Origin: Lepidodermella squamata
Lineage: Eukaryota; Animalia; Gastrotricha
Assembly: GCA_047495785.1 (NCBI GenBank)
Contig: JBLDXI010000011.1
Location: 1,884,905-1,948,904 of the forward strand
Length of the DNA: 64,000 bases
Direction of reading: 5' to 3'
Below the pieces are notes generated by a model. It searched no databases, had not been told where the DNA came from, and saw nothing but the letters and a program-made list of their open reading frames with translations. A program made the translations under genes and the position numbers. Below, one piece after another: positions 1,591 to 60,550 of the stretch (position 1 is the stretch's first letter; each line of letters begins with the position of its first letter).

Positions 1591-1941
1591 ATGGCGAACC
1601 TAACAATCTTCTGCGCCGTTTTGGCCGTTGCCATATTCGCGGCTTCCGTCGACGCGTTGCGATGCTGCCAGTGCGATACGTGCCAGAACAGTGTTAACGA
1701 CGTTACTTATTGCCCTTACAATCACGGATACTGCGTTACAAACACAACTACAGACGCTTCTGGCCAGCAGAAAGCAGCAATTGTTCGAGGCTGTTCGCCG
1801 ACCTGTCCAACCTCTGTCACCAAGGGCGATATTTCTTGTTGTCAGAGCGAGATGTGCAACTGCCCAAGCTCGTCGGGAGCTGAATCTTTACTAGGCAGTT
1901 TCGCCGTCATATCAATCGCTGCTTTGGCTAAGCTTTTGTAG
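1591..1941 (+). CDS. Ly6/uPAR (three-finger) GPI-anchored protein 1, 116 aa, 12 Cys in the mature domain
   Basis: Signal peptide, LRCCQCDTC...YCP...YCV...RGC...CP...CCQSEMCNCP, then small residues and a hydrophobic C-tail (GPI signal). Probable 5'UTR intron 1469-1549; AATAAA at 2121. Confidence 0.9.
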   Translation: MANLTIFCAVLAVAIFAASVDALRCCQCDTCQNSVNDVTYCPYNHGYCVTNTTTDASGQQKAAIVRGCSPTCPTSVTKGDISCCQSEMCNCPSSSGAESLLGSFAVISIAALAKLL

Positions 1942-3187
1942 AACAACTGGAAGTTTTGACGATAAAATTTATACGTTGTTATGAGTGTTTGTAAATAGGC
2001 TTCCCTATTCTCCAATCTCAAGAGTCACACCGTTGATTTTGGTTCAGCTGCTATGCTACATCTTTTGCGTGTCTACAATCATTTTCACATTTCGCTAGTT
2101 GTTGCAAAAGATTTATAGAGAATAAACATCTCGTTATACATTTTAAAGTGTTGTGACGCGTATTTTTGTTACTATACTGCAAAAAAACAACAATATTTTA
2201 ATCCTAAATATTGTGAGAAAATTGTTATGCTATTGCGAGGCTTCGCATTAAGGATCCTAACCTCAACCCAAATAGAAAAGATCCTGACATCCAATATCCC
2301 CTTAGAAGAAATGAGATTGGACATTTCAGTCACGAGCAGTATCAGCTAGTAGCTAAAGTCTCCTACTTTGATCCAAAACCAAAATCCCTGCCGTTAACTT
2401 GGAGATTCGAAGATGTATTTAGCTCGTTCCCTGTTATAAATTTCAAATGGGCAACATTTCTCAAAATTGTCAATAAAATTATTACGTAATTCTCTTCATT
2501 ATTTCCGAAACTCAGGCGATCCTGGTTTATAAGTTGGAGTCTACACCGAGACACAAGGCCTCAAGTGAAATATTAGGCTGACCTAGTTTTCTCACATTTT
2601 ATGAACGGTTAAGTTTGTGAGTGGGCGTTATATTACCAATTCTCAGCTTTCGCTACGTTATCCAGATTTCAATAGGTATTCGTTTTAGCGGAACCAAACT
2701 TAGGAATTTTCAGTGGACCTGATATCTCTTTTCGAAACATTCATAGCTGTCAGGATTGATCGGAGTAATTTTGAATTAATCATGTTTAAATTCAGCGTAA
2801 AATTCTGTGCATTGCCTTAATTTCGTAGAAATTTTTGAAAAGCGACCTTCGGCTTACCTAAAATTAGGTTCCGCAACATACAGACTTGGTTCTGCTCAAA
2901 GATATTCTGAATTTCAAATCAAAAGAGCTTTATTACGCTCAAACTGTGGCTTCACGTCGATTAAGCTGAACGTTCAAACAAGTCCGTAGCGAACCATCAA
3001 ACAGGCTTCTATACAGGAAAAGGTTCAGTGGCAATCAGTACAGCGATCCCGATTGCCTCATTTTGTCCTAATTTGATTATTTTGATCTACCTGGCTAATC
3101 TTGATAGTGAACCCGAATGCCCAAGTTCTAAGAATCTTTGGCGAACCCCAATAACATCTGCTTGGCTTGTTTTTTCCGCATAGGAGC

Positions 3188-3592
3188 ATGCTCCTTCTAG
3201 TTCTTACGTTTCTTTGGTCACCACAAGTCGTCGAAGGCCTAACGTGCTGTTTCTGCAAGAACTGTACAATCGGTAGCGAATACTCAAGCGGCAGCAGGTA
3301 CCTGCTAGAAAACTGCCCCGAAGACTCGGAATACTGCACGAGTTACATCATAGCAATTCCACGCAAATTCCCGCGCGAAAACGAACCGCAGTACGAAACC
3401 CGCGTGTGGAGCCAGTGCTCGCGGTACTGTTTAGACGGCGGCGGGCTTAATCTAGGCATTTGCTGCTCCGACAACAACTGCAATTGCCCGAAGGCGTCAA
3501 ATAGCATCCGACTAACATCCTACTCGATTGTTTGCACCTATTTGTCATTAATCTTAGCTGTTTTCAATAAAACAAACTACAATCTTGCCTAA
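3188..3592 (+). CDS. Ly6/uPAR GPI-anchored protein 2, 134 aa
   Basis: ATG at 3188 follows the acceptor ttttttccgcatag (ends 3183). LTCCFCKNC...CP...YC...QC...YC...CCSDNNCNCP; hydrophobic tail. Confidence 0.85.
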   Translation: MLLLVLTFLWSPQVVEGLTCCFCKNCTIGSEYSSGSRYLLENCPEDSEYCTSYIIAIPRKFPRENEPQYETRVWSQCSRYCLDGGGLNLGICCSDNNCNCPKASNSIRLTSYSIVCTYLSLILAVFNKTNYNLA

Positions 3593-3677
3593 TGCGCCTC
3601 TTTAATGCTATAGGTGAAAAATCCCAGCAACGTCAGCATTCGTACGTTTACATACTGTTTACGTTTTCAGTTCAAAA

Positions 3678-4061
3678 ATGCACGTTTCAAACTACGCCTT
3701 AATCTTTGTGATTGTTTCGAGTTTTCTCGATGGAATTTACGCGATTTCTTGCTGCTCCTGCGTCGACTGCAAAGGTAAATCAACCCAGGTTGCTGATGTC
3801 CAGCTGTGCCCAATCGATTTCAACGTTTGCTATTCTTACGTGAGGAACAACTCCCTGGGCGAGGTTTACATTCAGCGAGGATGTGGCAGTCAGTGCCCGT
3901 TGAAGATCGACACGACTAATGCAATGGTTTGCTGTATTGGCGATGGCTGTAACTGCCCGAATTACAACGGCGGCCTGTCACAAACAGCGCAGTTTATCAA
4001 TTACATGCTGTTATCTTTGCTAGCATTCGTAGCTTGCATCGGTTCAAGCCGTTTACTATAA
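3678..4061 (+). CDS. Ly6/uPAR GPI-anchored protein 3, 127 aa
   Basis: Signal peptide, ISCCSCVDC...QRGC...CP...CCIGDGCNCP, hydrophobic tail. TTTTCAG acceptor ends at 3670; AATAAA near 4084. Confidence 0.9.
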   Translation: MHVSNYALIFVIVSSFLDGIYAISCCSCVDCKGKSTQVADVQLCPIDFNVCYSYVRNNSLGEVYIQRGCGSQCPLKIDTTNAMVCCIGDGCNCPNYNGGLSQTAQFINYMLLSLLAFVACIGSSRLL

Positions 4062-4852: not shown

Positions 4853-5894
4853 TCAATCAGCCCCACAATACTCAAAACCCGTAACGCCATAAGCGCTGCC
4901 CCTGGAGCCATAATACTGGAAATAATTCGGCCCGAGAAGACCGCAGCACTCAGCGTAACTGTCAGAGCTGTAAGTATTTGGCGGCCTGGAGGGCTTAAAG
5001 CGAAAAGAGAAGATAGCAATGAGCAAACATATCAGTCAAAATATTACTAGGGTGGAGGTGACGGCAACATAAGAGTCGTAGATTGCGGTATAAGGGAAGC
5101 GAAAACAAAACGCTGAATCCCTTCCATCAGATGTAGATGCTGCTACTTTGTATGCATTGTCAGGGTCGACTTTGCCAATACAAGCCAATACAGGTGGAGT
5201 GCCAGGAACTATCTCGTATTTCAGGGAAAATCTACTATTCGCAGCGTTACAACAATCAGCAAAAGAGCTGAAAGTATTTGGATTAGCAGAAGATGCCTGT
5301 AATTCATCCAGCTGTTAAATCACATCCAAGTACATAAGTTAATTATTACGGTTGTTCCTGTTTTCAGAACCGAGTCGCATGCGCCAGCATTAGCGGTGCA
5401 GAATGGGATATTAGGTTTTGAGATCGACCAATCACCCTGCGTCCTCGTTATTACACACAACTTGTAGGTGGGCTATGAAAATTCAAAAACTTTGCAGGTT
5501 TTCGGAATGAAATTGACTATAAACTCTCGCTTACAGGGCTCGCGCAAGTTTGTCCTTCCGGGCACTGAATTGCTGACTTTGCAATGCAATTCTTAGAAGT
5601 CGGGTCGCAAACACTAGTTGATAGCGCGCAGGTTTGGTCGCTCGGACACGAAAGTATAGATGATGAACCAGTTTTTGCGACGCAACTGTTCGTTGTTGTA
5701 TCGCAAACGTTAGTTGAAGCAACACAGGAAGATCCAGGGCTACACTGATCGGTTGTCTTATAACAGGCGTAGCCATTTGGGCAAGCTGCAGGGGAATCTG
5801 CTGCCGACTTGAGGGATGAAGTTATAGATGATGCAGGGCAAGCTGTGACAACGGCGCAAACAGCGGCCAGGAGGGCGAACAGTAGCATTTCCAT
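4853..5894 (-). CDS. Secreted Cys/Ser/Thr-rich protein family, member A, 290 aa; exons 5894-5535, 5472-5350, 5296-5048, 4993-4853
   Basis: Manual splice keeps the frame open (three phase-0 GT-AG introns). Signal peptide, CPxGQxC repeats, and the motifs FSSFADCC, KYEIVPGTPP, FCFRFP, YGVT..C shared with three paralogues. Confidence 0.8.
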
Positions 5895-8238: not shown

Positions 8239-8640
8239 ATGAAAGCTACCTTAATTTGCGCAGGGATAGTTATTCTGGGCCTTCTCGGACAATCCGATGC
8301 CCTGTCTTGCTGCACGGGGACGTCATCGAATGTTCGCGATGTCAACACGTGCGGAGCTGGTCAAAATTACTGCTCGGTAATTCGAACTGTTAACGGCGGC
8401 TCAGGATCCGTTTCATACTATCGCGGTTGTGAGTCGACATGCCCACAGCCTGCGACTTACAGCGAACAAATCACTTGCTGGTAGGTTCTTTCGATTTAAT
8501 ATCGCGAATTTAGCTAATTTTCCCTTTTAATACCCAGCCAAACATCTGCCTGCAACTGCCCGATTAGCTCAGGATATGTTGTAAAATCTGCAACTGGACT
8601 CATTTTAGCCGCGATCTTCTCCAAGTTGCTCCTTTTATAG
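8239..8640 (+). CDS. Ly6/uPAR GPI-anchored protein 4, 114 aa; exons 8239-8480, 8538-8640
   Basis: A 57 bp GT-AG intron splits the CC; splicing restores CCQTSACNCP and a hydrophobic tail. 10 Cys; acceptor ttctcag ends 8231; AATAAA near 8685. Confidence 0.88.
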
Positions 8641-8860
8641 TGGAAAAAATGAAATGTTGACATGAGCTGATTAGATTTTTGTTAAATAAACAATTTCTTG
8701 AATTTAATCTGCACTTGAATGTTATATAATATGGCAGGTGCCGCCTTAACAACGCTTTTTAAGGTGTTTGCACCGGGGTGTGAGACGGAAAGCCGCTAAT
8801 CTGCGCGCGCGATGCCTCACGCCTTCCTCATACTCATTAAATTTTCATTATTCAAAAAAA

Positions 8861-9259
8861 ATGCTAGCCGCTTTTATTTTCCTGGTCTGCGTTTTACTGC
8901 CGAAGCCTTCAATTCAGGGAGATGATGGCTTGACTTGTTGCATTTCAACAGAAACAGACCAATCAAAGGCCCCGCCGCGAGATTTGGACTACTGCCCGCG
9001 AGATGCCAACTTCTGCGTCGCTACGAAAACTACAAGTCCCGGCAATTTGAACACCGAACCGGTGAAGAGTTATGTTCGACAACGCTACTGCGCTGCGACG
9101 TGCCCGCAACCGATTGAGAATTCGTTCCTGCTCGAGGCTTGCTGCCCCAAAAGCGGATGCAACTGTCCAGCGGCGACTGCAGGTTCTGCAAATGTCAAAC
9201 TCCACTCGAGATTGGCAATTCTCGTCATCTCATTAGCTATCGGAATTTTAAGGAACTAA
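8861..9259 (+). CDS. Ly6/uPAR GPI-anchored protein 5, 132 aa
   Basis: ATG at 8861 begins the signal peptide. LTCC...YCP...FCV...RYC...CP...CCPKSGCNCP; hydrophobic tail; 10 Cys. Confidence 0.85.
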   Translation: MLAAFIFLVCVLLPKPSIQGDDGLTCCISTETDQSKAPPRDLDYCPRDANFCVATKTTSPGNLNTEPVKSYVRQRYCAATCPQPIENSFLLEACCPKSGCNCPAATAGSANVKLHSRLAILVISLAIGILRN

Positions 9260-9980: not shown

Positions 9981-10970
9981 CTAAGTTTTCTTCTCCTCTT
10001 CTCTCGCTTTTTCATAGTCTTTCAAAATGTAAACGATCCTTTGCTCCCAAGGCCAGCCGCAGTAACCTGAGAAAAAAACGGGGCGAAATTACGAAAAATC
10101 ACGAAAAATCAACAAAATGAGCTAACCTTTTTCTCCGCAATAGTACGAAGGAGTGAGGACGATTTGAGGTGGCATAACTTTAATGAGGTAGTGATTCAAA
10201 TTGCTTTCGTCATGCCACACCGGTATAATATCCTTCGCCATATCGTGCTTGGTACACTCCGACATTTGCTGCCACATGCTCATAACATTCTGAAATTTCC
10301 CGCCATAAACCGCCCCGCTGTAATAGATCGTACCCTCATTGCTTGGTACGTAAGTGCAAGAGTTGTTATTCGTTTCGAGCGGCAATTTCTCCCGTTGGTC
10401 GTTAACGTGGTACCAATGCCAGACCGCAACTAGGTCACCGAAAATTTCGGCACCAACGTAGCCGTTGAAGTAGATATCAGCGTCTATATTGAAGATGTAG
10501 TCGAGATTCGAACTTTCCAACAAGTCCGTTGCATTGAGGTACATTTCCGGTCTTTGCATCGAATCGCCAGGCCATCCTAGGCGTTCCTGGTAGATCAGCT
10601 TAACGTCATCTCCTTTCGGCCCGTCTTTCAGCCGGTTCGTGAAAATGAAGTAGGTGACTTTGTAACTTTCGGGATCTGGGACATTCGTGAGTAGGAATTT
10701 CCGCCCGGATCTTACGAGTTTATGCGTGAAAGTCACGTAATTTCCAAGCCCGACTACGACAATGCCAAGGTGGACGATTTTTGCGCCGGCTGTTGAGACA
10801 TGGCCCGTTTTTGCCTGGGCGACTCGTTTGTTCTTCGTTAGCTCAAGAAGCTGCTCGAGGTATAATCGCTGTTGCGATAAGCTGAACAAAATGTTGTAGA
10901 CAAGATAGGCGAAACACGAAAAAAGCAGCAGGCCAAGGATGATGAGAAAGGCGCGATTATTAAGCAACAT
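9981..10970 (-). CDS. GT6 family (ABO/alpha-1,3-Gal(NAc)-transferase-like) glycosyltransferase, 309 aa; exons 10970-10127, 10066-9981
   Basis: Type II TM anchor; motifs YFIFT, WPGDSMQR, NIDAD (DxD), YYSGAVYGG, WHDESNLNHY, VLTPSY. A 60 bp intron adds ...RIVYILKDYEKAR, which aligns with the ABO C-terminal K-x5-R. Confidence 0.92.
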
Positions 10971-12613
10971 GATGCTCGTAAGGCTTGTAGATGTAGCGAG
11001 ATGTACGCAGGGCTTTATGCCGTGGAGCTTTTTTATTGAGATGAATGCGAGAAGGTTTTTACGTTTTGTTTTTGAGCACCCGGCCATTACGCGTGCTCGT
11101 GAGCGAGGTGAGCTGGCAGGGCACCCACTACGAGCGTGTGCAGGTACCTACTATAGCTAGTCTCGCTCACACGCACGCGCATTAGAGCATGAATAACGGC
11201 GTTTATATTTCCATGTCGCAGGGTATCATCAGCACGCCCGGGTGGCATACAGGATTGAATGCTGAAATGACACCCTTCCGCTTTTAGTTGAGATTTTAAT
11301 TTGTATTTTATGACCTGGAAATGAATTTTATGGCTTTAAATCTTATTTCACCGGAATGTATAAGATGCTAGGTAAGTGGTCAAATTCAAATCGGATTTCT
11401 ACTATTATATAAGCGGATGGAGTTCAGTGTTCAAGGAAAACCCACAAATGCCCCAAAATTCCGAATTCCTAGATGCATAGACAACACTGTAACAGATAGG
11501 AAGCAAACGATTGCGAAAAGCGCGGCACGCGACCACTTTTTGTATCACCCAACGCCCTATCCGCCCATTATGAAATTAATTAGTATTAAAGACAAGTGGA
11601 CCAAATATTCATCTTTCACATTTTTTTAAATTCGTCAGAAAATTACTAGATTTCGGTCTATCGAAAGAGCCCAGGTAGACTATGCAGGCTCGCATAGTTA
11701 TTTTTCTAGCATTTGTTGAAAACAGCTGTTTTCGAGATTTTCGGCAAAACTGTCATTCTTCTGCCGCGGATGGGCCATCCGGAAATTGTTGAAAATTCTA
11801 AGAAAAATTGTTTGTCCATGTTGACCATTTTCTCTATCCAACGATATAAAACTTGTCCCGTAACTATTTCATTTTGATTTTCGGGCTCGATAAATTATTT
11901 TTGCTGAATATATTTGGGAAGAGGCAACGCGGCGAGAGAATTCACGGGTTCAGGACTTTAAAATACCTTCTTATTCGAAGTATTGTTTGTCATGAAAGTT
12001 GGGCACGACAGTTTTGGTTGAATCAGTCAAAAGCTTGACCATAGACCTAATGTGGCTTCGTTCCCACCCCAAAACGTTTGTTCCCGTCCTTGTCCAATGC
12101 ATAACAAAATGTCACGCCGGCCCATGCGTCTGTTTTTGTGGAATACCGCTTCCTGCTTACTACAGGTATTGATTCTTCATAGAATCGCCTCTAAAAGGAT
12201 GGGAGATAATTGGAATTTATATTCATTGGATCAAAAACTCAAAAACTGATTTTATTAAAAAAGTTATCTTTGTATAATCCGGACAACTATCGTGCACCTT
12301 AATCTTAATCACCCTAATCAAAGCCCGAGCTATACAAAGAACATTACAAATAACACTGTACATAATCAAGCAATTATGTCCTGTACTGTAAAGAGACTAA
12401 AAAGACTTGAAAGATCGCAACAATTTGAATACAAATGCATAAATCCAGTGGTTCGAGATGGATTATTCGTAAAAAGGTTGGATATTCTTCATTGATCTCG
12501 AGATAGTGAAGCACTATTTGGCCCAGTATGACTTTTCACGAATTTCACCGTGTATAATTCCACAATCATATGAGAGTTCAAGCAAGAAATGTCCGCGCAA
12601 CGGTTTGAAACCT

Positions 12614-14628
12614 CTATATCACCGTGACGAACAAGAGGCATAGCACTGCGAACAAAATTCCAGCCGCATAATTTCGATTGGCACCACTGGTTGAGTCGCT
12701 GGCAGATTTACCGGAAGAAGCAGTAACGAGTTTAGGCTGGCCATTAGGCCCATCTCTATTGCAGTCAAGTCCAACAGCAGCAGTTGGTGGAGATCGACAA
12801 GCTTCGGTTATTTGCCTCATTTCCTTCGCCGTCAAGGGGGAATCGTAGATCGTAACACAGGCCATATTGTCATTTTCCATCAAACCGTACTTTGTATTGT
12901 TCTCGCGATCTAACGCTCCTCCGATTACAATCGATGGCACCCATTGAATGGCTGAGTCTGATGCGTAAAACAGCTTCCGATCGACAGTGGTTGAATTCGA
13001 GTACATTGTATTCATATCGAATTTAATTTTCGAGTAGTCTAAAATAATCAGCGTGCTGGTTTTATAAAATTGGTAAACCGTCAACTTCTGATCGCTTGAA
13101 TTGTAAGTCACGCCATAAAACTTCCACGCATAGCACAATTCCGGGATAGCTAGAGACGCTGCAACCCTGCTGGTTCTTTTATCGAAAACTTTGACATGAA
13201 GCGTGTAGTCTGTTGCGCAATGAAGCGTGAGAAATGAGTTCGCCAGCTCCATCTCAAACAGTCCGCTGGGCCGGCCATCACGCCAAGCTGGATTTCCACT
13301 ACCTCCGCCGCCCACACTTGTGAAGAACGAGACAGAGAATCCGGCTGGTTTCAGCGGTATCATAGTCTTATAAGCAGCCAAGGTTGTATTTTCGCCAGGA
13401 GACATGTCACTGCAGCAGTAACCGACTGCAAAGCTGAAGTAGGCGGAATCTTCTCCATAAGGCGAACTAGTCTCCAGTGATGCACCGTACGATCTGCTAT
13501 CCGGCTTGATTCCACAAATTGTGTCGTTCAGTTGCGATGTTTTGTCCAGATAAGGAGCAAATACAAGAGATTTAGGTTGCGGCCATGCTACGCCGAGTTG
13601 AACTGAAACGATTAAGATATTTAATTTTAGCTACCATAATTTTTTTAAATATTTGGATCTGATATCAAACGACTTGGATTTTTCACCACGCGTTATTTCA
13701 GTTTCAGCTCCAGAATGAATTAATTATAGAAATATCTCTAGTTTCCAATCTGCCATTGAACATACCGTTTCCGTCACGCTTGCAGTCAACTGTCGAGGAT
13801 ATCTTTGGAGCTTCGCGGCAAGATTCCAGCAATTGCCCGATTTCACTCGAATTCAGGGCTGCGGTGAACATCGAGAAGCAGAACAAGTTGTGTCCGGGTC
13901 GGAATCCCCATTCTCGGTAAGCATCCCTATCCAAAGCATCAGCCAGCATCAACTGACTCCAATCTCCGCCGATCTGCAGAGGTTTAGGCATTTTGCCGGA
14001 GACCGACTTTGATAAATTGGCCTTAGGATCAATGACATAAGCCGTCAGTTGGCCCGCGGAGCTATCGTGGGATATCGCGAAAAACCGCCAACTATCCACC
14101 CCACATACACTTGAGACGTTGAGCCTGATTGTCATATTTATATCGTCCTTGTCAAAAACTTTGACGATAAGGTCTTTCGAAAAGCAGACAGCTGTTAAGA
14201 AGGACTTGTCGGTTTCAAGTTCCAGTAAACCAGCAGCAGTGTCGGACAATGATTTCAGGTAAAACGATAGCGTGAAGCTAGGCTTTATCGGAACAGGGCG
14301 ATAGATCGTTAAGTAGTCCCAATTTCTTCCAATGTCTGTACTCAACGAGTACGAACCAGTTAGATCCCCGAACGGGTTGTTTCCTGGGACAAATGCGGCA
14401 AAAGAGCTCGTGTTTACTGGAGCTAGGTTGCAAATTCTGTCGTTCAAATCGTTGTTTCTGTCCATCTGGGCATGGAATACTAAAGCATCGAGTTTTGGCC
14501 ACCAAGCAGTGGCGGCTGAAGAACATTCATACCGCGAAAACAGTTAACATTTCAAATTTTGAAATAAATTCGTGCATGAACTTACCTGGCGCTAAACAGC
14601 AGGCGATCGTTAACACTAAAAGGTTCAT
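12614..14628 (-). CDS. Two-domain LamG-like (ConA lectin/glucanase fold) GPI-anchored protein, copy 1, intact, 593 aa; exons 14628-14586, 14515-13766, 13602-12614
   Basis: Spliced length 1782 nt, open. Signal exon plus two phase-1 domain exons, each with LamG_3-like motifs (SFTLSF, WxFxAxxxD, LTxY, IGG, ALxxxEI); Ser-rich linker and hydrophobic tail. Confidence 0.85.
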
Positions 14629-17572: not shown

Positions 17573-19490
17573 CTATATCACCGTGACGAACAAGAGGCAT
17601 AGCACTGCGAACAAAATTCCAGCCGCATAATTTCGATTGGCACCACTGGTGGATCCGCTAGCAGATTTACTGGAGGAAGTAACGAGTTTAGGCTTTCCAT
17701 TCGGCCCATCTCTGTTGCAGTCGAGCCCAACAGCAGCAGTTGGTGGAGATCGGCAAGCTTCGGTTACTTGCCGCATTTCCTTCGCCGACAGGGGTGAATC
17801 ATAGACTGAGACACAGGCTATGTTGTCGTTCGCAATCATACCATACTGGATATTGGTCACGCGATCTAAAACTCCTCCGACAACAATTGATGGCACCCAT
17901 TGAATGGCCGAGTCTGATGCGTAGAACAGCTTACGATCGACAGATGTCGAATTCGAGCCCAAGCTATTCATATCATATCCAAGTTTCGAGTAGTCGAAAA
18001 CAAAAAGAGTGCTCGATTTATGAAATTGGAAAATCGTCAATTTCTGATCGCTTGAATTATAAGTAAGTCCAATGAAATTCCACTCCCAGCAGAGATTTGG
18101 GACAGCCAGAGATGCCGCGGCACTACTGTTCCTTTTGTCGTAAACTTTGACATTAAGCATGAAGTCCTCTGAGCAATGAAGCGTGAGAAACGAGTTTCCT
18201 AGCTCCATTTCAAACAGTCCGATAAGCCTACCACCGCGCCGAGATGAAGGGCTTCCAAAACCATCGCGGTTCGAATTCGCGAAGAAAGAGACAGAAAATC
18301 CGGATGGTTTCAACGGCACCATCGATTTGTAGTAGGCCAAGGTTCTATTTTTAGTACTAGCCATTGCACTGCAGCACTGTCCAGTCATGAAGCTGTAATA
18401 GCCTGAAAATTGTCCGTAGGGCGAATACTCATCTAGAGAGGCACTTTGCGATCGGCTATACGGCGCGACCCCGCAAATTGTGTCGTTCAATCGCGAAATA
18501 TCGCCAAGGTACGGGGCAAATACTAGAGAATTAGGGTTTGGCCAAGGAACGCCGAGTTGAACTACAAGAAACAAATTATTCGTGTATTTCATTCAGTTAT
18601 CGAATGTCTTACCATTCCCCTCGCGCTTGCAATCAGTTCCGGATGATCCCCGAGGAGCTTCGCGGCAGGCTTCCGGCAACTGGCTGATTTCGTTCTCATT
18701 TAAGGCGGCGTTGAACATCGAGAAACAAAATAAGTTCTGGCCAGTTCCGAAACCCCATTCCTTATATAAATCCCTATCCAAAGCATCGCCGAGCGTTAGT
18801 TGACTCCATTCTCCACCGATCTGGAAGGGTTTGCTTGTATTACTAGATGCGGATTTCTTTGATTTTCCATTAAGATCGATGACATAAGCCGTCATTTGGT
18901 TTGCTGTGCCATCGTGGGATATCGCGAAATACCGCCAAATATTATCACCACAAGTGCTTGAGACGTTGAGCTTGACAGTGGCATTAATGTCATCCTTGTC
19001 GAAAACTTTGACAATTAGGTCATTTGACAGGCATGTAGCTGTTAGAAATGACTTGTCGGTTTCAAATTCAAGTATTCCAGCGCCAGAACTAACTAAAGAT
19101 AGGTAAAACGATATTGTGAAGCTTTGTTTTATCGGAACAGGACGATAGATCGTCAGATAGTTCCATTTCTTCCCAATGCTTGGACTTTGAGAGTACGAAC
19201 CAGCTTGAGAGCCAAACGGGTTTTTGCTAGCGTCGAATGCGGCGAAAGCACTTGTGTTTACTGGAGCCAGGTTGCAAATTCTGTCGTTCAAATCTTTGTC
19301 TCTATCCATGTGGGCATGGACTCGAGGCTAAGGACTCGAGTTTCGGCCAAGCTGTGGCTGCTGTCGAACCTTCAATTAAAAAGACGGGTTTAGTTAAAAT
19401 CTTAATTACATTTGATATTCACGCTTGAATGATTTTACCTGATACCAAATACCCGATTGTTAATACTAGAAGGTTAGACGGTTTCAGCAT
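17573..19490 (-). pseudogene. LamG-like family copy 2, frameshifted at the start of exon 2; exons 19490-19439, ~19369-18613, 18561-17573
   Basis: Homologous to copy 1 throughout. Duplicated CTCGAGTCC (19318-19340) gives a net +4 nt and a stop (...KLESLASSPCPHG*). Both domain exons are otherwise open. Confidence 0.72.
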
Positions 19491-20654
19491 GATACAATTG
19501 AGCGAGTTGATTTAAAAAATCGATGAAACGTCGCTAGCCAGGTAAAATAAAGCGTTGTAGCCCTATAAATCACATACAATTATATTATAACTGATATCAA
19601 CGCAGATTTTGATGGCTTTATAGGCATAGAGCATAGAGAATCTATTACGTGCCACTGCGTTGTAGAGGTAAAAGAAATTAGCATTTTGCTTTAAATTCTT
19701 GACATTTTTTATAACATTATACAACTCGTGGCCAATATTGCCTGATAGATAATGTCAATATCTCCACTATTTTCTTGTAAAAAATGGCGTTGTAACCTGT
19801 GAGCGTGCCGTGCCTTATGACACAGTCATATGTGACAGACTTTCAATCGCACACACATTGCATTACACATTACTATAAAGCAATTTTCTTCATCTCTTCA
19901 TAGCAATAACACGTATTTGCTTAAGGCTGCCTGTAAAGAAAATTCCCGCCACATTATGATGAGTGCTCGGCATGATAACTGGCCGATTTTAACCATGCTA
20001 AAATGTATAATGCCACTGGTGACATTAGAAATTTCTTTTAGTGGAAGATATTATTTTTTATTCCATGGTGGTTTTTGATGAAACATTCCCTACACGCGCT
20101 GATGTAAGGGCTAAGCTTCAGTTAAATATTTTTATAAAAACCCAAGTGACAGGTATTTTATAAGGAATGAATAAACAGACATAATTATAATAATAATATT
20201 AATAATAATACTATTTTGAGTTTTGGAAATTCTAAAATCCCTGTTGCAGAAGCAAATTTTAGATAACTAAGACCCATTATCTGCAATTATTGGTCATTTA
20301 TTTTAGCCTGCTGTTACCTATTTCGATATTTTCGTTCGATGGATTTGGATAAAATTGAACAATAAACAATTCATCACCATGAAACTATATGAAACTATAT
20401 GATGAAACTGTAGGTATCATCGATTTCTGTTCGGAGCGAAAGCTGCTGTTTCAGATAATCAAAAGCTAGCTTTAATGATTCAACGTTAAACGTTCAACAG
20501 TTGCATGCTTATGAGTAATCTCCCTGGAGATATCGCATAACTCAGCGAATCAAGAAATTTCAAGAAATGCAAGAAAAACGCAAGAAAATGGAAGCTAGCA
20601 TTTCTAATACTTATATATCCATGTTAATTTATAATAACTCATATTTTCTCGTTT

Positions 20655-38734: not shown

Positions 38735-39005
38735 CTTTCCATTTGGCCCATCTCTATTACAGTCGAGTCCTATGGCAGCAGTCGGTGGAGATCGGCAAGC
38801 TTCACTCACTTGCCTCATTTTGTTCGCTGACAGGGGTGAATCGTAGGCAGTAACACGCGCCATATTGTCATTTTTCCATCAAGCCGTACTTCGTATTGGT
38901 CTCTCGACCGAAAGCTCCTCCGGCTGCAATCGATGGCACCCATTGAATGGCCGAGTCTGATTCGTAGAACAGCTTCCGATCGACAACTGTCGAATTTGAG
39001 TACAT
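38735..39005 (-). pseudogene. LamG-like family exon-3 fragment (copy 5)
   Basis: Degenerate match to the MYSNST...SAIQWVPSI...KYGLME...NRDGPNGK region, with an indel. Confidence 0.85.
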
Positions 39006-39035
39006 TTTACCCATTAATCATCAACGTATTGAAAC

Positions 39036-48900: not shown

Positions 48901-50056
48901 CTGTAATTATATTAACGCAGCCCTTGTCGTTTGATTATTTTTTTCGAATTGTTTTTTAGCGTTAAGTTGTTTTATATTGATTTATTTTTATACGTTATTA
49001 GGTGTAGTGCTCTGCCCTTTTTCGAATGTCAAATTTGCGAATATACATAAAACTAGCATGAGTCAAATTTAAAAACTTAATTTAAATTCTAAATTTTTTT
49101 AGAAATTTAACTAGCATGAGTCAAGCTAAGAAGAGAAGGCGGCCTGATCCTGATGTCTTATTTCGTTGTCCAGTTAGCGGCTGTGGTTTTTTCTCGTCCG
49201 TAATGAATGATTTCGAGGAGCATTTTAAAACCCTGCATCACGAAATTTTGAAATCGCGCCAGCCGCAGACGTTTTTATGCCCGAGGGACTGTCATCATGG
49301 GCCAATTTTGCATATGAAACATTTCAAAGAACATGTCGCTTCATGTAGCGCGCCGATAAGATCGTCGCATGTTTCGAATGTTTCGGAGCCGGAAATTCCG
49401 ATTTTCGTTACTCAACCGCCTATTCCGCAGAAGAAAGCTCGCGTCGAACATGCCGACCGATCTATTCGTTACCAGGAAGTTCGTCTCACTGAACAGGCCA
49501 GTCGCGACGAGGCGAATTTTAACGATGTATTGAAGGATTGTTTGAAGATGCGCATGCGAGGCCAACAAATTCGCGATATTGATGAATATGTTGCTGGCCG
49601 TGTAAATCAATTCCGTATATACGGACAAATGGATTCAGCTCGAGTTCTGACGCCATTGGCTACTGAGCGCAGCCGAAATCGTTACTTCGAGGCGACTGGC
49701 CAGCGCATTAAACCGCAAGAAGTTGACTTCGGTTATGGTCGAAAGGGTTATTATATGCCCTTCCTTCCAACCTTGACTGCTGTGCTTAAAGTCCCATCAG
49801 TTCAAACTCAAATATTCGAGCCACCTGTGGCGCCTGGCGACGGTATTCTAACCGATTTTATTCATGCGGATTTCGCCAAGGAGCTGAGAGAATCATCGGG
49901 CTTCGAACACGTCATTTTTATTCTATTCCATCTCGACGATCTCGGTCTCACCAATGCACAAGGTAAAAATTGTTTAATATTCCAAAAAATTTAGAAAATC
50001 TAAAAATATTCAACAATATTCCAAAAATTCAAAAAAATTATTAAATTTAAACAAAC
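45945..50056 (+). mobile_element. CACTA/EnSpm (CMC) transposon, 5' part, truncated
   Basis: CACTG terminus, followed by at least five direct ATGCGCG and several inverted subterminal motifs (45955-46210), then a transposase exon. No right end found. Confidence 0.65.
49116..49962 (+). CDS. EnSpm-type transposase N-terminal exon (truncated)
   Basis: NLS KKRRR, two C2H2-like fingers, YMPFLPTL..VL, DGILTDFI, and ILFHLDDLGLTNAQG (resembles LYxDDFExxNPLG). Donor gtaaaa at 49963. Confidence 0.72.
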
Positions 50057-50781
50057 AAACAGTCCACTAGGCCGGCCATCGTCGAAAGCTGGATCTCCAC
50101 TACCTTGGCCGCTCACACTTGCGAAGAACGAGACAGAGAATCCGGCTGGTTTCAGCGGTACCATCGTTTTGTAGGCAGCCAGGGTTTTATTATCACTCAT
50201 TTTCATATTGATACAGCAGTAACCAACTGCGAAGCTGAAGTAGCCGGAATCTTCTCCGTATGGCGAACTAGCCTCCAACGAAACACTACTCGATCTGCTA
50301 TCGGGCTTGATTCCGCAGATTGTGTCGTTCAGTTGCGAGTTTCTGTCCAGATAAGGGGCGAATACAAGAGATTTAGGTTGCGGCCATGGAACGCCGAGTT
50401 GCACTGAATAAAGATCAATAAGTTTTTTGTAAAAGGATAGCCAAAACTGTAACTTAGAAACATTAAGCCATGAATAAATCGCTTTTTAACCGAATTACGG
50501 AATTTAGAATCAAAGGAATCTTCTTGACCTACAGCCGTAACATGTCAATTCCTCTCTATGTCTCTATGGTGCAAGAAGCCGAATCGAGAGTACGATTTCT
50601 ACAGGTTAGAAATTTAGCATGTTATCTCGGGTCTTTTGATGTGATGGAAAAGAGCGATTCAAGCGAACTAATTATTGAAAAATTACTTTAAATCCACGCG
50701 GCACATGATTCACAAATCTACAGTAATATTATGACATGAATTTCATAAGTTGAGAATTTTGAAATTTGAAGATGGCTGCGA
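49866..50781. repeat. Left arm of a 916 bp inverted duplication (right arm 52242-53157)
   Basis: Reverse-complement identity; three identical ORF pairs in the track; both boundaries read directly from the sequence. Confidence 0.95.
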
Positions 50782-51244
50782 AAAATATTAATTTAATTAT
50801 AAGATATTAGGCTTATTTATTGTTAACGAATGTTGCCTCAATTTTCGCCCATTTAAAACTATTTTCCCAGTAATAACTTTCTTCTGTCCCTGGAAGTGTC
50901 CACACCTGTGTACATAGGTAAATATGCTTTTAATGTAATTATTTGTGTGCTATGCATTGAAGAGAGAGATGCTGAAGGACAAAAGCACTTTTCGCGCATT
51001 TTCCAGCACCACCGCTGGCATTATACCTATGGGCATATCTTGAATCACAACTATTTTTTACGAGGCCACGTGCCGTAGATTTGTTTAAGCGTAGCCAGTA
51101 TACAGGCATAGGCTTTGGTCTTTCACAAAAAGCTGTGTCAATAGCATTACTCTACGTTGTGCGTGATATACAAGGCTGCAGTGCTGAAACAATTTCAGTG
51201 TAGCTCAAATTATCGATTATTCATAATTATCTTTAAACTACTTC

Positions 51245-53655
51245 ATGATGAAGCCGACTGACCTTTTGTTACTATCAATCGCGTGTTTAGCATCAGGTAT
51301 GCTTATGCAGGAATAGAAATGCAAACTGTACTCTGCGCTGTTATAAGGTACTGCAGCAGCCACTGCCTGGCCAAGACTCGACGCTTTAGTATTCCATGCC
51401 CAGATGGACAGAAATAACGATTTGAACGATAGAATTTGCAACCTTGCTCCATTAAACAGGAGCTCTTATGCCGCATTTGTCCCAAGAAACAACCCCTTCG
51501 GCGATCTAACTGGTTCGTACTCGTTGAGTACAGACATTGGAAGAAATTGGGACTACTTAACGATCTATCGCCCTGTTCCGATAAAGCCTAGCTTCACACT
51601 ATCGTTTTACCTGAAGTCATTGCCGGACACTGCTGCTGGTTTGCTCGAACTTGAAACTGACAAGTCATTTCTAACAGCTGTCTGCCTGTCAAATGACCTT
51701 ATCGTCAAAGTTTTCGACAAGGACGATATAAATAGGACAATTAGGCTCAACGTCTCAAGCGCTTGCGGGATCGATAGGTGGCGATATTTCGCGATATCCC
51801 ACGACAGTTCAGCGAGCCAACTGACGGCTTATGTCATCGATCCCAAGACTAATTTAACAAAGTCGGCTTCTGGCAATATGTCCAAACCCCTGCTGATCGG
51901 CGGAGACTGGAGTCAGTTAACGCTCGGTGATGCTTTGGATAGGGATGCTTACCGAGAATGGGGATTCCGAACTGGCCAAAACTTGTTCTGCTTCTCGATG
52001 TTCAACGCCGCTCTAAATTCGAGTGAAATCCGCCTATTACCAGAATCGTGCCGCGAAGCTCCTCAGAAATCTCCGACAGTTGACTGCAAGCGTGATGGAA
52101 ACCGTAAGTTCGATGGCTTCCTTCTTAGATTCTGTGATGAAATAATTCGAATTGAATAAGAAATGTCACCTTTTAGTTTCATTTTTAGTGAGCTGCAAAA
52201 ACCAATTTATCCATTGGAAATCTGATAGTTTTCGAAAATTGTCGCAGCCATCTTCAAATTTCAAAATTCTCAACTTATGAAATTCATGTCATAATATTAC
52301 TGTAGATTTGTGAATCATGTGCCGCGTGGATTTAAAGTAATTTTTCAATAATTAGTTCGCTTGAATCGCTCTTTTCCATCACATCAAAAGACCCGAGATA
52401 ACATGCTAAATTTCTAACCTGTAGAAATCGTACTCTCGATTCGGCTTCTTGCACCATAGAGACATAGAGAGGAATTGACATGTTACGGCTGTAGGTCAAG
52501 AAGATTCCTTTGATTCTAAATTCCGTAATTCGGTTAAAAAGCGATTTATTCATGGCTTAATGTTTCTAAGTTACAGTTTTGGCTATCCTTTTACAAAAAA
52601 CTTATTGATCTTTATTCAGTGCAACTCGGCGTTCCATGGCCGCAACCTAAATCTCTTGTATTCGCCCCTTATCTGGACAGAAACTCGCAACTGAACGACA
52701 CAATCTGCGGAATCAAGCCCGATAGCAGATCGAGTAGTGTTTCGTTGGAGGCTAGTTCGCCATACGGAGAAGATTCCGGCTACTTCAGCTTCGCAGTTGG
52801 TTACTGCTGTATCAATATGAAAATGAGTGATAATAAAACCCTGGCTGCCTACAAAACGATGGTACCGCTGAAACCAGCCGGATTCTCTGTCTCGTTCTTC
52901 GCAAGTGTGAGCGGCCAAGGTAGTGGAGATCCAGCTTTCGACGATGGCCGGCCTAGTGGACTGTTTGTTTGTTTAAATTTAATAATTTTTTTGAATTTTT
53001 GGAATATTGTTGAATATTTTTAGATTTTCTAAATTTTTTGGAATATTAAACAATTTTTACCTTGTGCATTGGTGAGACCGAGATCGTCGAGATGGAATAG
53101 AATAAAAATGACGTGTTCGAAGCCCGATGATTCTCTCAGCTCCTTGGCGAAATCCGCGAAATGACTTACAATTCAAGCGATCAGAAGTTGACGGTTTACC
53201 AATTCTATAAAACTAGCACATTGCTTATTTTGGATTACTCGAAAATCACGTTTGATATGAATACAATGTACTCGAATTCGACAATTGTCGATCAGAAGCT
53301 GTTCTACGAATCAGACTCGGCCATTCAATGGGTGCCATCGATTGTAGTTGGAGGGGCTCTAGATCGCGAGAACAATACAAAGTACGGATTGATGGAGAAT
53401 GACAATATGGCCTGTGTTACGATCTACGATTCCCCCTTGTCAGCGAAGGAAATGAGGCAAGTAACCGAAGCTTGCCGATCTCCACCTACTGCTGCTGTTG
53501 GACTTGACTGTAATAGAGATGGCCCTAATGGCCAGCCTAAACTCGTTACAGCTTCTGGTAAATCTAGTTACGGATCTATTAGTGGAGCTAATCGAAGTTA
53601 TGATTCTGAATCTTTACTGGCGTTTTTATGCATCTTGTTAGCTACGGTGATGTAG
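51245..53655 (+). pseudogene. LamG-like family copy 4, exon 3 disrupted; exons 51245-51296, ~51348-52103, 52620-52966 // 53164-53655
   Basis: 49 codons present in the paralogues (EMELANSF...WKFYGV) are replaced by about 197 bp of mostly inverted transposase sequence; the rest is open. Confidence 0.8.
52242..53157. repeat. Right arm of the 916 bp inverted duplication
   Basis: Reverse complement of 49866-50781. Confidence 0.95.
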
Positions 53656-57281: not shown

Positions 57282-58184
57282 ATGGACTTATCAACTCTAC
57301 TTATTCTCGTTGCGGCTGTATCGGTTGTGAGAGCTTGCCCGCCAACGTCTACTACTACAACCCCTTGCCCAACAACTCCGACCACGAGTTATCCTGGAAC
57401 TTGCCCAACCGGGCAGAGTTGTTTGACAACTACGAACTATTGTGATCTGTCGACAAGCAACTGCAACCTGAAGACAGCCAATCTATGCCCATCGGGGCAG
57501 TCATGCGCCGCCCCTTCTAGTCCGCCAGCATCGGTAATGTTTAATTTTCATACTTGGCGAATAACCATTCAGTATCATTATCAAGCCCGTCTTCAATCTG
57601 TGCAAAGTTGTCACGCAAGGCGGCCCTGGAGTAAGCGGAAATGACTTACAATTCTGCACAGCTAATGCTGCAGCATGTAATGCAGTATTGACAACTGGAT
57701 CTGCTGTAAGAACAATCTTGGAATAGCTTCAAGCTACGATTTTTTGGTTATGGTCCAATTTCATAGGTTGGCTCTTCCACCTATTCGACCTTTGCTCTAT
57801 GTTGCGGGGCCCTTACACCAAATGCCAATGTGAAATACGAAATCGTCCCAGGCACCCCGCCAATTTTAGCGTGTGCAGCCGGCGCGAGTTCAACTCCCTA
57901 TATATTATCTTCTAGCACAGCCCCCGATACGACGGCTGTATTCTGCTTTCGCTTCCCCAATACAGCGCCGAGCGGCTTCGCCCAGAATAGCGGCGCGGTA
58001 AGATAACGGTAATATTCCTGAAAGCTATTCATGACCTTTCTCTTTCAAGACAGTAAAAGGTGGAGGGCCCAAGGCGGCCGCGACCTTCCAACAATGCTGC
58101 GATCTGATATCAGCGGGTACCTTAACCTTTGGCAATGCGGGTAGCGCCTATGGCGTCACAACCTTTGAAACATGCAAAAACTGA
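57282..58184 (+). CDS. Secreted Cys/Thr-rich family member C; exons approximately 57282-57533, 57586-57705, 57768-57997, 58049-58184
   Basis: Open after three phase-0 introns; YSTFALCC, KYEIVPGTPP, FCFRFP, TFQQCC, AYGVTTFETC. Confidence 0.8.
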
Positions 58185-58660
58185 AAACTGAATAATTTCC
58201 GAAGCTACGCACGAAATCGGCGAAATTTACGGGAATGACTGCTGTTATTCTATTTACCTTTCAAACAATTCTCCTTTTTATAACCTCTTCTGATTTCATT
58301 TACCTGTGCGTATCAATACTCAGCTTGTATTATATTTCTATTGTTGACTTCAAAACTGTAATTTTCTTATTCTTCTTCAATTTGTAAAGATACTGCATTG
58401 CCCGGTAAACTTCAGCTAATAAAAGTTCATCTAATAAAAGCGCAGCTATTTTTACTTTTACGTCGAATTAATTGAGCATAGTGACCCCGGGATTCTTCAA
58501 TAGATTATAGCACTTGGAACTAGAGCCAACTTCAACCTGCCTTGTCAAAAGGTTCATGGTTTTAATAATTTCCAGGTTTCCAAATCATTCGTGACTTGGT
58601 TAATCACTCATTGTTAAATCCAGTATGCGTATAATTCGTATACAAACAAGTCGTACAAGC

Positions 58661-58802
58661 AGAGCGAAGTATCGCTAGGGATGGTAGGGATCATCCCTAT
58701 CAGTTCCACCGATCCGTATGGTGAGCTCGTTCAAAGACCAAAGGGGGGACCCTTATGTCGATTTTGGTGATCCCTACCAGATCCGCGGTCCTACTTCGCT
58801 CT
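58661..58802. mobile_element. Short MITE, same family as 40042-40179
   Basis: TIR AGAGCGAAGTA...TACTTCGCTCT. Confidence 0.7.
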
Positions 58803-59662
58803 ATGCGTACAAGTACTTTTTTAATTTACGAAACGTGGCTGGCCTAAAATATCAACCAGCCAAAGACAATATATTACTCAACTATGCGAGGGAAGCGAGC
58901 TTTAGTGAGCGGTATTTCTCAGCAATTCGAGCTGAAAATAGTTTAAAAATGATTTTCAGTGGCAGGCCATAAATTTCCTAGAAAGGTTTTACTTATTTCC
59001 AGCGACTTTTAAACTTCTGCGCCCCTATTCCAAGCCATCCGCGATTCCACAAATTTTAGCGACCCCACTTCCAATAAATTTCAAGCTGTAACATATTCTC
59101 ATCAAATTATAGGAAGATTCTTTTAGGAATCAGCCACTCTCGAGCGGAGCGAGCTGCCTCATAATTAACGTATTTTACGAATTATTAGTCGGGACCGAAA
59201 TATAGGGCAGACGGCAGACCCTCTAGTTTCATTTGTTGGCGATTCTTCCGGATGGTGTGGCCTGGGCGGAGCCTTCAACGTGGAACCGCTCAACTTCAAC
59301 GTTTTCGTGGTTAACATTATCAAAAAGACTGCTATAAAACTAGCCTTGGCGGAAACTCCCATCAGCAGAAATTCTTCACGCTGGAAAAGTCAATGAGTCG
59401 AAAGTGATAAATGTGGCGGATGCGAACATCAGCTGCAATTTTACTTGAGGAAAAATTGTAGCGAAAATGTAAAAGCGAAAAGTTGAGAAATCACCCGGCT
59501 AGTTATTAAAATTGTTTATTTATTGCAGAAAAGCCGATTTAGGCAAACAGCTTTCACTGTAATTCAGCCGTTCATTTGTAATCGATTTGCCAATACAGTA
59601 ATGTACAGTTATAACGCACGCGATTGTATGAGCAAATCGATTAATTCATGCTGATATTGTGC

Positions 59663-60550
59663 TTATGCATTGGAGCCTTGGCATTTTTCCATTGTTACGC
59701 CGTATACGGTATCCGTGGTGGGCCGAGGTTTTGGGCTGATGGGTGTAGTGCCGAGATAAAAGCAGCAAGCCGCGAAAGTAGTATGGGTATATTGAGATGG
59801 TGGGCTGGTGGTCTGTAATATACATAAATTGTTACAAAACTTCATGCAGATCCAAAACAAAACGCAAATTTACCAATCCACTAGTTATCATCACAGAGCT
59901 TGTAGGGAAAGCTGTATTGGGGAAACGAAAGCAATAGCCCTGAGTTGCACCAGCAATGACACCTGTCACTTTGTAAGGCGATGCATCAGCTGCTCCGATG
60001 CAGGTCGGAATGCCCGTAGTACTGCCCACCGGCGTGATGATTTCGTATGTGATCCAGGCAGCGTTAGCAGGTGTCTGTGTGGCGGCGCAGCACGCAGCGA
60101 ATGTGCTGAAGCTATTCGGCGAGTCAGTAGAAGCCTATAGCCCCGTAAATGCGAAATGAACCATCGCGATTTAACGAGCAAATGAAATCATTACCACAGC
60201 AGCAGGTGTTACGGTGAGATAAGCTGTACATGAAGCTCCGGCGACGGCGTGGCAAAATTTGACACTTTGACCAACCCCAGCACCAGTCCCAAAGGTTGTC
60301 ATTGAGCACAACTGGTAGGTAGGCTGAGAGCGGAAAAGGGAAGATTATTTTGAACGACGAAGAAGGTTTCATCTCAAACCGTGGCCTGGCAACTCTGGCC
60401 ATTGGTAGTGCACGGATTGGCCGTGTTCAGGCAGCTTTGACTCGATGTGCAGGTCGCGCTCGTTGGGCACGGAGTTGTAGTCGTCGAAGCAGGGCAGGCT
60501 GTGACAGCAGCACAGGCGGCAGCGAGAATTGCCAGCGTAAGGTAGGCCAT
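59663..60550 (-). CDS. Secreted Cys/Thr-rich family member D, 236 aa; exons 60550-60380, 60323-60195, 60134-59874, 59812-59663
   Basis: ATG at 60550 (MAYLTLAILAAACAAVTACP, missed by the ORF track). Exon 2 and 3 lengths (129, 261 nt) are identical to member B. Confidence 0.85.

Follow-up and report, generated by a model that had tools for sequence, protein, structure and literature searches.

A GT6 glycosyltransferase gene and a probable fucosyltransferase gene amid surface-protein gene families in a gastrotrich genome

Do two kinds of glycosyltransferase gene that lie amid genes for surface and secreted proteins form, together with these, one system that writes a blood-group-like glycan and reads it, or are they neighbours in an ordinary gene cluster? 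The question is raised by a stretch of 64,000 nucleotides (nt) from the gastrotrich Lepidodermella squamata (contig JBLDXI010000011.1, positions 1,884,905 to 1,948,904 of the forward strand), the whole of which is hereafter called the window. An earlier note on this DNA had proposed that the locus couples the synthesis of such a glycan with its carriers and with variable receptors. Our own reading, to which we assign a probability of roughly 0.6, is that the window, from the genome of a non-vertebrate animal, is poor in genes and contains repeats, and that the locus is a birth-and-death cluster of surface-protein genes, including a working gene for a family 6 glycosyltransferase (GT6) and a probable fucosyltransferase gene (the FUT-like gene). 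Three families (Ly6, two-LamG_3 and Cys/Ser/Thr-rich) would have multiplied by local duplication, some copies having decayed since. The clustering would stem from this tandem birth and death of surface-protein genes; two single-copy type II glycosyltransferases would sit amid the arrays, and the FUT-like enzyme may or may not supply the acceptor for GT6. The parts are real as genes, while their coupling into a new writer-reader module is conjectural and not demonstrated. The G+C content is 42% across the whole window, and its long open frames are few and scattered.

The GT6 gene (9981..10970, minus strand) encodes 309 amino acids (aa) and was recognised by Pfam and PDB matches, an RNA splice joint, sequence variants and alignments. 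Its open reading frame (ORF; 10122-11087, minus strand) matches Pfam Glyco_transf_6 (PF03414) with an E value of 5.8e-33 (114.5 bits against a cut-off of 25) and the solved structures of ABO and of Bacteroides BoGT6a in PDB with about E 1e-24. Unspliced, this ORF ends about 28 profile positions short of the family profile, which a second exon completes: exon 1 (10123-10970) is followed by a 60-nt intron and by exon 2 (9981-10062; 26 codons). The conserved C-terminal Lys and Arg of the enzyme come from exon 2, after a splice that is supported by RNA: in a contig of sequencing run X2, position 10062 abuts 10123, and the segment removed has GT..AG ends when read on the minus strand.

The evidence from sequencing runs concerns assembled contigs over positions 8700-14650 (5951 letters). 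The contigs of run X1 span this whole interval without a gap in depth, and X1 behaves as DNA. Those of run X2 cover the exons of GT6 and of the neighbouring LamG copy 1, leave the spacer at 10889-12082 bare and have a poly(A) loose end at 12239, because of which we take X2 to behave as RNA; introns of 60, 70 and 163 nt are removed in its contigs. All our RNA evidence comes from this one run, which has no tissue resolution, and it holds transcripts of GT6, of LamG copy 1 and of one Ly6 gene. GT6 is an intact, functional gene under purifying selection; 19 of its 23 variants in the runs are synonymous, and the four replacements all fall in the stem, none in the catalytic domain.

The protein has an N-terminal type II membrane anchor and a stem of about 70 residues. 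Its DXD motif is Asp-Ala-Asp and its catalytic motif Trp-His-Asp-Glu-Ser (HDES), both of which align with all relatives. In this family, Asp-X-Asp binds the metal, the Glu of HDES is catalytic, and the Lys and Arg bind the UDP diphosphate (PMC3961637). By homology, we predict a metal-dependent, retaining alpha-1,3-Gal/GalNAc transferase of the secretory pathway. At the donor-selecting position that corresponds to residues 266-268 of ABO, the window GT6 has Ser-Gly-Ala, which in the scaffold of the human enzyme led to dual A/B activity (PMC5377540).

The earlier note had called this gene ABO-like; the family holds, but the nearest kin are bacterial enzymes of the DXD type. A word-index protein search with GT6 retrieved 74 relatives, the best of which (36-41% identity, 130-160 bits) are about 250 aa long and have no stem; two of these are named Dependentiae. 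On their contigs, glycosyltransferase, methyltransferase and sulfotransferase genes are densely clustered and lack introns. Human ABO reached 91 bits and GGTA1 65 in the PDB search, so that vertebrate ABO as the nearest kin could be ruled out against the 130-160 bits of the Chlamydiota/Dependentiae enzymes. When prokaryotes were scanned with one genome for each species, 164 relatives came to light, at the top of which stood Chlamydiota (Parachlamydiaceae, Simkaniaceae and Rhabdochlamydiaceae) and Dependentiae/Babeliaceae. Asp-Ala-Asp is common to these and to the window GT6, whereas the Bacteroides-type clade has Asn-x-Asn; a DXD-type clade of prokaryote and phage GT6 had already been defined (PMC3516806). 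A quick maximum-likelihood tree, unrooted and with no vertebrate or other eukaryotic GT6 included, placed the window GT6 inside the Chlamydiota/Dependentiae group, beside Dependentiae, with a Shimodaira-Hasegawa-like approximate likelihood ratio (SH-aLRT) support of 88 and a branch length of 1.8.

With PaGT6 of Parachlamydia acanthamoebae and the rest of the DXD clade, the window enzyme shares Asp-X-Asp, HDES and the C-terminal Lys...Arg, the identity over the catalytic domain being 37-41%. It differs from them by its type II anchor, its stem, its spliceosomal intron and its very long branch, as well as by His-Trp-Tyr-His where the DXD relatives have His-Pro-Gly-Tyr/Phe, and by Ser-Gly-Ala at the donor-selecting position, where they have Ala-Gly-Gly. 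The vertebrate members (ABO A/B, GGTA1, Forssman and iGb3 synthases) have the Golgi-type type II topology, the GT-A fold family, the DXD and the HDES in common with it, but their similarity to it is much lower. Since the vertebrate paralogues differ in acceptor, family membership alone does not imply a fucosylated one. Both BoGT6a and PaGT6, however, require a Fuc-alpha1,2-Gal acceptor (PMC3516806, PMC3961637); PaGT6 is metal-dependent and transfers GalNAc onto the H trisaccharide or 2'-fucosyllactose, being inactive on N-acetyllactosamine (LacNAc) (PMC3516806). By analogy with these enzymes, the window GT6 most likely acts on Fuc-alpha1,2-Gal.

How such a gene came to be in an animal is a question of its own. 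Tentatively, it could have been acquired by horizontal transfer, the donor being either an intracellular bacterium of Chlamydiota/Dependentiae type or a virus that carried a gene of this kind, and have been domesticated later (intron, membrane anchor, host-like composition); this would be compatible with any reading of the locus as a whole, be it birth and death, a pair of cooperating enzymes or a full module. The scores of the bacterial relatives against that of human ABO, the position in the tree, the dense intron-free glycan clusters on the relatives' contigs and the statement, as of 2014, that GT6 was not found in invertebrates (PMC3961637) all favour a transfer. The tree that suggests it has neither a root nor eukaryotic members, though, its support is only 88 on a very long branch (1.8), and the direction could be either way. 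The host-like composition also speaks against it: the G+C content and the G+C content at third codon positions (GC3) of GT6 equal those of the neighbouring genes, and any transfer must consequently be old.

Among the surface-protein arrays, tblastn and frame analysis revealed a family of genes for proteins with two LamG domains; of its four copies in the window, two are intact and two damaged, and there are two fragments. The earlier note had described three tandem copies, and three do lie between the GT6 and the FUT-like gene; a fourth, however, is situated beyond the latter, and the two fragments come in addition. The gene plan consists of a signal exon of 14-17 codons, a short intron, an exon for domain A, a further intron and an exon for domain B, after which follow a Ser-rich stretch, small residues and a hydrophobic C-terminus, a pattern that resembles a glycosylphosphatidylinositol (GPI) signal. 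The products are predicted to be surface-tethered, GPI-like ectodomains. At about 30% identity, domains A and B are paralogues of each other, and six Cys are conserved in each.

Copy 1 (12239..14628, minus strand) is intact by its RNA joints, poly(A) loose end, ORFs and fold. Its signal exon is at 14586-14628, its domain A at 13766-14515 and its domain B, with the Ser-rich stalk and the GPI-like tail, at 12614-13602; X2 contigs join 14515 to 14586 and 13602 to 13766, with both introns removed, and the poly(A) site is near 12239. In its Ser-rich stalk, runs X1 and X3 have in-frame 3-nt deletions at 12719-12720, which represent either a length polymorphism or paralogous reads. Copy 2 (17573..19490, minus strand) has open ORFs for both domains and a frame shift between the signal exon and domain A, where a 4-nt insertion near 19330 (19320-19345) is a local duplication of a CTCGAGTCC-like motif; it is a recent pseudogene, or there is a sequencing error or an alternative start. 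The frames of copy 3 (26878..29782, minus strand) are open throughout, and the intron that separates its two domains has grown to about 1.07 kb. Copy 4 (51248..53655, plus strand) retains an intact signal exon and domain A, while its domain B is broken at 52967-53160.

One of the two fragments, the C-terminal part of a domain B (38735..39014, minus strand; 83% identity over 46 aa by tblastn), is frameshifted and lies 1.2 kb upstream of the FUT-like gene, which implies that the LamG family once duplicated into a position beside that gene. The other, also found by tblastn, repeats the first half of domain B in inverted orientation (50057-50404). It lies within the left arm of an inverted repeat that a repeat search revealed around copy 4 (left arm, 49866..50784; right arm, 52239-53157). 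The arms are 919 nt long, 100% complementary, and flank the signal exon and domain A of that copy. Where the right arm ends, about 48 residues of domain B are lost. Both arms contain the first half of a domain B together with the end of an ORF (49086..49994, plus strand; 292-302 aa) that has Cys/His pairs and no family match, and that may be part of a mobile element; the ORF itself ends inside the left arm. The repeat has one of two origins: a very recent inversion-duplication connected with a mobile element, or an assembly foldback. The four copies and two fragments, the frameshift, the interrupted copy and the perfect repeat are the signs of birth and death in this family.

A foldback at this repeat would also fit a wider assembly artefact, in which bacterial glycosyltransferase contigs had been mis-joined to animal DNA, and the nearest relatives of GT6 are indeed bacterial. 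Against such contamination stand the 60-nt GT..AG spliceosomal intron of GT6, spliced out in the RNA contigs, the eukaryote-type anchor and stem and the host-like composition of this gene, and the independent DNA run that spans 8700-14650 without a depth gap. It is the intron, its removal in RNA and the unbroken DNA coverage that lead us to reject contamination, the chance of which we regard as negligible.

The LamG family had also been called diversifying, which was not borne out. The pairwise ratios of nonsynonymous to synonymous substitution (dN/dS; NG86) are 0.16-0.20 for domain A and 0.27-0.32 for domain B, at dS of 0.4-1.1. Gene-wide diversifying selection on the copies is thereby rejected; ratios of 0.16-0.32 at such dS imply that they are old duplicates under purifying selection.

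The lectin-like fold that the note had attributed to the family was, by contrast, confirmed, although Pfam is blind to these domains: the seven of the window gave no Laminin_G_3 match, and the only related one, to Toxin_R_bind_N, came from one domain with E 0.075. No relative of domain B was found by the word-index search. A HMMER search of 1.84 billion representatives with a profile of the seven domains gave 22 weak matches (best E 2.9e-9), and in nine of the ten best that were scanned, Laminin_G_3 covered the matched part. An AlphaFold prediction with the seven window domains alone as alignment had a predicted local distance difference test (pLDDT) score of 41 and was discarded. After 18 remote matches were added, the model reached a pLDDT of 85.4 and a predicted template modelling score (pTM) of 0.87. 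It has structural matches with Foldseek E values of about 1e-7 and VIA-align Z scores of 14-18 over 150-190 residues, as well as template modelling (TM) scores of about 0.7 against Laminin_G_3 clusters of the ESM Atlas. Its jelly-roll neighbours are the HCN subdomains of clostridial neurotoxins and NTNH, thrombospondin-N, AbnA domain 4, pentraxins, PAPP-A, laminin LG and CBM40, among which are sugar-, heparin- and protein-binding domains. With these transitive profile matches and this model, we consider the predicted LamG/ConA-like beta-sandwich fold as settled.

In fold, the window domains are thus like other Laminin_G_3/ConA-like jelly-roll domains, but they have no close relative among the 1.84 billion representatives, and the architecture (signal peptide, two tandem six-Cys domains, Ser-rich stalk and GPI-like tail) sets them apart. 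Since there is no word-search relative, and the matches among the representatives are few and weak, we take the family to be lineage-restricted. Remote single-domain LamG_3 relatives of 282 aa occur on two compact, animal-like metagenome contigs (L004 and L006; ENA ERZ23486787 and ERZ27333047), next to genes for annexin, PDZ, Cys-loop channel, CUB, EMC1 and MOLO1 proteins. Around them, we found neither glycosyltransferase neighbours nor shared synteny in the fetched metagenome contigs. A small-genome animal is present in both of these metagenomes.

Two further families contribute to the arrays. That Ly6 genes are interleaved with the others, as the earlier note had it, is supported by their Cys framework and by profile matches to three-finger proteins; there are five or six in the window, including partial copies. 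The first of the full genes (1591..1938, plus strand) has a signal peptide, a Cys pattern ending in CC..CNC, a hydrophobic C-terminal tail and profile matches to three-finger proteins at E 2e-9. The second (3188..3592, plus strand) was recognised by alignment and profile, and the third (3678..4061, plus strand) matches Pfam Toxin_cobra-type with E 2.2e-5, just below the threshold (25.0 bits against a cut-off of 25.3). The fourth (8861..9259, plus strand) has low-depth X2 cover at 8700-9296. Upstream of it, a partial gene (8239..8481, plus strand) specifies the signal peptide and the first two-thirds of the domain, its ORF stopping before CC..CN, and a Ly6-like fragment of two short matching pieces at 891..1263 (plus strand) was detected by tblastn with ORF 3678-4061 (E 2.8e-6). 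A profile of five of the Ly6-like ORFs matches a long neurotoxin (E 2.2e-9), SLURP-1 (1e-4) and LYPD6 (8e-3). The paralogues are 23-31% identical to each other, their Pfam match being borderline or absent, and a GPI-like C-terminal pattern can be discerned in their sequences. They thus share the CC....CN framework, the signal peptide and the hydrophobic tail of known Ly6/uPAR proteins such as SLURP-1, LYPD6 and the snake three-finger toxins, but differ by starting with a Cys-Cys doublet and by the divergence of the paralogues.

Four genes for small Cys/Ser/Thr-rich secreted proteins are interleaved as well, which agrees with what the note had said of Cys/Thr-rich genes; each product has a signal peptide and contains 7-14 Cys, Ser+Thr making up 28-40% of its residues. 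The first (5517..5894, minus strand) encodes 125 aa with 14 Cys and 29% Ser+Thr, and the third is at 57282..57644 (plus strand). The second (40601..41295, minus strand; first exon 40960-41295; 40% Ser+Thr) and the fourth (59964..60550, minus strand; first exon 60374-60550) are paralogues connected by the direct repeats D5/D6. Conservation between these two continues downstream of the first exons over about 365 nt (40601-40963 and 59964-60328; 78-79% identity), where a Cys-rich segment with Cys-Cys-Cys-Gly-Asn is encoded; judged by this, the genes at 41 kb and 60 kb probably have more exons.

The other enzyme of the window is more elusive. The FUT-like gene (35343..37535, minus strand), recognised by a sequence model, protein-language-model neighbours and a NodZ-like alignment, specifies 485 aa as modelled. 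Exon 1 (36581-37535), from a 320-aa ORF (36573-37535, minus strand), encodes a type II anchor and ends at 36581 with a GTAAGT donor; exon 2 (35343-35845) lies within a 214-aa ORF and begins, in phase, at 35845 after a CAG acceptor. The 735-nt GT..AG intron and the 485-aa join are a sequence model. Neither half matched any Pfam family, even at E 10, and phmmer against the PDB sequences, also with a two-sequence profile, found nothing. A word-index protein search with exon 1 and a JGI metagenome scan with exon 2 returned no homologue. Aligned by hhalign with a seven-sequence GT11 profile, which was built from neighbours of bacterial GT6 genes and features, amongst others, the His-x-Arg-Arg-Gly-Asp-Tyr motif, both halves had probabilities of <1%, the profile being so shallow that distant kinship is possible.

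Independently of each other, both halves have the same protein-language-model neighbours, XG_FTase (GT37), which heads the list, GT11, O-FucT and FUT8, with scores of 0.92-0.93; we treat these as a lead and not as proof. A single sequence was found with any similarity to the protein: the product of a gene at 4793-5812 of a bacterial locus (L037), itself of the NodZ family (Pfam E 1.2e-9; solved NodZ E 5e-4). Exon 2 matches it weakly in BLAST over motif III, with E 0.019 in the 0.58 Mb of fetched loci and 3e-5 pairwise. In the weak alignment of the two proteins, the order of the motifs is kept at similar spacing, from the N-terminal Gly-x-Gly, motif I (Leu-Gly-Leu-Gln-Ile-Arg) and a Thr-Thr-Asp strand to the C-terminal Asp..Leu-Val-Ile-Ser..Ser. 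These motifs define the superfamily of alpha1,2-, alpha1,6- and O-fucosyltransferases (PMC8439653), the Arg of motif I being the GDP-fucose binder. The FUT-like enzyme is, like the members of the GT-B superfamily (NodZ/FUT8 of GT23, XG_FTase of GT37, GT11, O-FucT of GT65/68), anchored as a type II protein and has a NodZ-like motif order; unlike them, it reaches significance with no profile and no sequence of a solved structure. On these grounds, we consider it quite likely that the gene belongs to the fucosyltransferase superfamily; the enzyme is probably of the GT-B type. The earlier label of fucosyltransferase-like can thus be kept for the motif order and the language-model neighbours, but it finds no hidden Markov model (HMM), PDB or word-search match, and the enzyme is not of GT11.

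Bacterial gene neighbourhoods bear on whether the two enzymes belong together. We collected 142 nearest-neighbour ORFs around 72 bacterial GT6 genes (loci L008-L087); 54 are GT2, 11 are GT11 and one is NodZ-like. The latter is the above-mentioned gene of L037, from the metagenome-assembled genome (MAG) MFD00082.bin.c.6 with a chromosome of about 1.09 Mb, which lies 1.2 kb from a GT6 gene at 3001-3615. Eight of the GT11 neighbours could be located by motif, all in more distant loci (Bacteroidota, Planctomycetota, Bacillota and others); none of these eight was in the named Chlamydiota/Dependentiae loci. In these bacterial GT6/fucosyltransferase loci (E. coli O86 type; L037, L066, L070 and others), both genes are found in one neighbourhood, as they are in the window, an arrangement that suits consecutive steps in making A/B antigens. 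In the bacteria, however, they are direct neighbours within dense clusters, mostly with GT11 as the partner, while the window is eukaryotic, its partner is not GT11, and the two genes lie 24 kb apart with other genes and repeats in between.

Could the two enzymes nevertheless act in sequence, their linkage being functional and the surface arrays mere bystanders? The FUT-like enzyme would then make Fuc-alpha1,2-Gal, and GT6 would cap it with alpha1,3-Gal or GalNAc to a blood-group-like epitope. Characterised plant members of XG_FTase (GT37) make alpha1,2-fucosides, and it is this family that heads the language-model neighbours of the FUT-like protein. The two are the sole enzymes in the 64 kb, and the bacterial neighbourhoods offer both GT11 and NodZ-like partners. 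On the GT6 side, the demand of PaGT6, from the nearest DXD clade, for the H trisaccharide or 2'-fucosyllactose, with no activity on LacNAc (PMC3516806), and the A/B activity of Ser-Gly-Ala in the human scaffold (PMC5377540) are in line with such a pathway. This GT6-plus-FUT half of the proposal may be called chemically plausible, given that Fuc-alpha1,2-Gal is the acceptor required by the nearest characterised GT6. On the other hand, the FUT-like protein has no similarity to the GT11 profile or to any fucosyltransferase of Pfam or PDB, its only sequence tie is with an alpha1,6 family, its splice is modelled and not seen in RNA, and the 24 kb that separate the genes contain repeats and damaged copies. 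A functional writer pair is thus possible but doubtful.

Far less probable to us is a single co-adapted locus for surface identity or symbiont recognition, made up of writer enzymes, Ser/Thr-rich carriers and variable LamG receptors. All the parts are present and all are secretory. Many of the structures that match the LamG domain best are carbohydrate binders (AbnA domain 4, CBM40, pentraxins and laminin LG), the small proteins are rich in Ser and Thr, and transcripts of GT6, of LamG copy 1 and of one Ly6 gene occur in the same RNA run. But a shared fold does not equal sugar binding, other close neighbours of the domain bind proteins or heparin, the LamG copies are under purifying selection, two of the four are damaged, and the distant LamG_3 relatives have no linkage to glycosyltransferases. 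In its most specific form, the proposal would have an invertebrate produce Fuc-alpha1,2(Gal/GalNAc-alpha1,3)Gal with a DXD-derived GT6 and a very divergent plant- or NodZ-like fucosyltransferase, accompanied by LamG readers and Ser/Thr-rich carriers, which we hold to be improbable.

The birth-and-death reading, which we prefer, has its own difficulties. That every recognisable non-transposon gene of the window is secretory, as already claimed in the note, holds at the resolution of a Pfam scan of 95 further stop-to-stop frames of at least 75 aa, in which RVT_1 was the sole family (two frames). Such uniformity over 64 kb weighs against a mere cluster, as do the facts that the only two enzymes are of the classes that make A/B epitopes, that the nearest characterised GT6 need a fucosylated acceptor (PMC3516806), and that bacterial GT6 genes are often beside fucosyltransferase genes (11 of the 142 nearest neighbours being GT11).

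The known allorecognition complexes of invertebrates provide a comparison. The receptors of Hydractinia Alr and Botryllus fuhc are Ig-like, extremely polymorphic and recognise protein. Like the window, these loci contain surface-receptor genes that were duplicated in tandem and stand clustered, some copies being damaged; unlike them, the window has no positive selection shown (LamG dN/dS 0.16-0.32), and a glycan as ligand is conjectured. If mere proximity is all that joins its parts, the locus would be a surface-protein gene cluster of the ordinary birth-and-death kind. The ABO, alpha-Gal and Forssman antigens are products of GT6 enzymes, and here an invertebrate GT6 is intact, spliced and constrained; with its intracellular-bacterial kin, it bears on the origin and spread of blood-group-type glycans. 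Should it be true that the FUT-like enzyme supplies the acceptor, an animal would have built such a pathway independently of vertebrates. The two-LamG GPI-like family and the FUT-like protein, both of them sequence orphans with recognisable folds or motifs, are useful targets for glycobiology.

The remaining content of the window is sparse. Scans with Rfam and for tRNA genes gave zero matches. In the 24 kb between the GT6 and FUT-like genes, there are, besides the three LamG genes, a reverse-transcriptase remnant of the long interspersed nuclear element (LINE) type (20628..21029, plus strand; Pfam RVT_1 E 3.3e-15) and an ORF of 260-272 aa without a family match (25807..26625, minus strand). 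Between GT6 and LamG copy 1, at 11287-11883, the depth of X1 rises to 5 to 25x the local level and many contigs have loose ends; the segment at 11.3-11.9 kb is a high-copy repeat.

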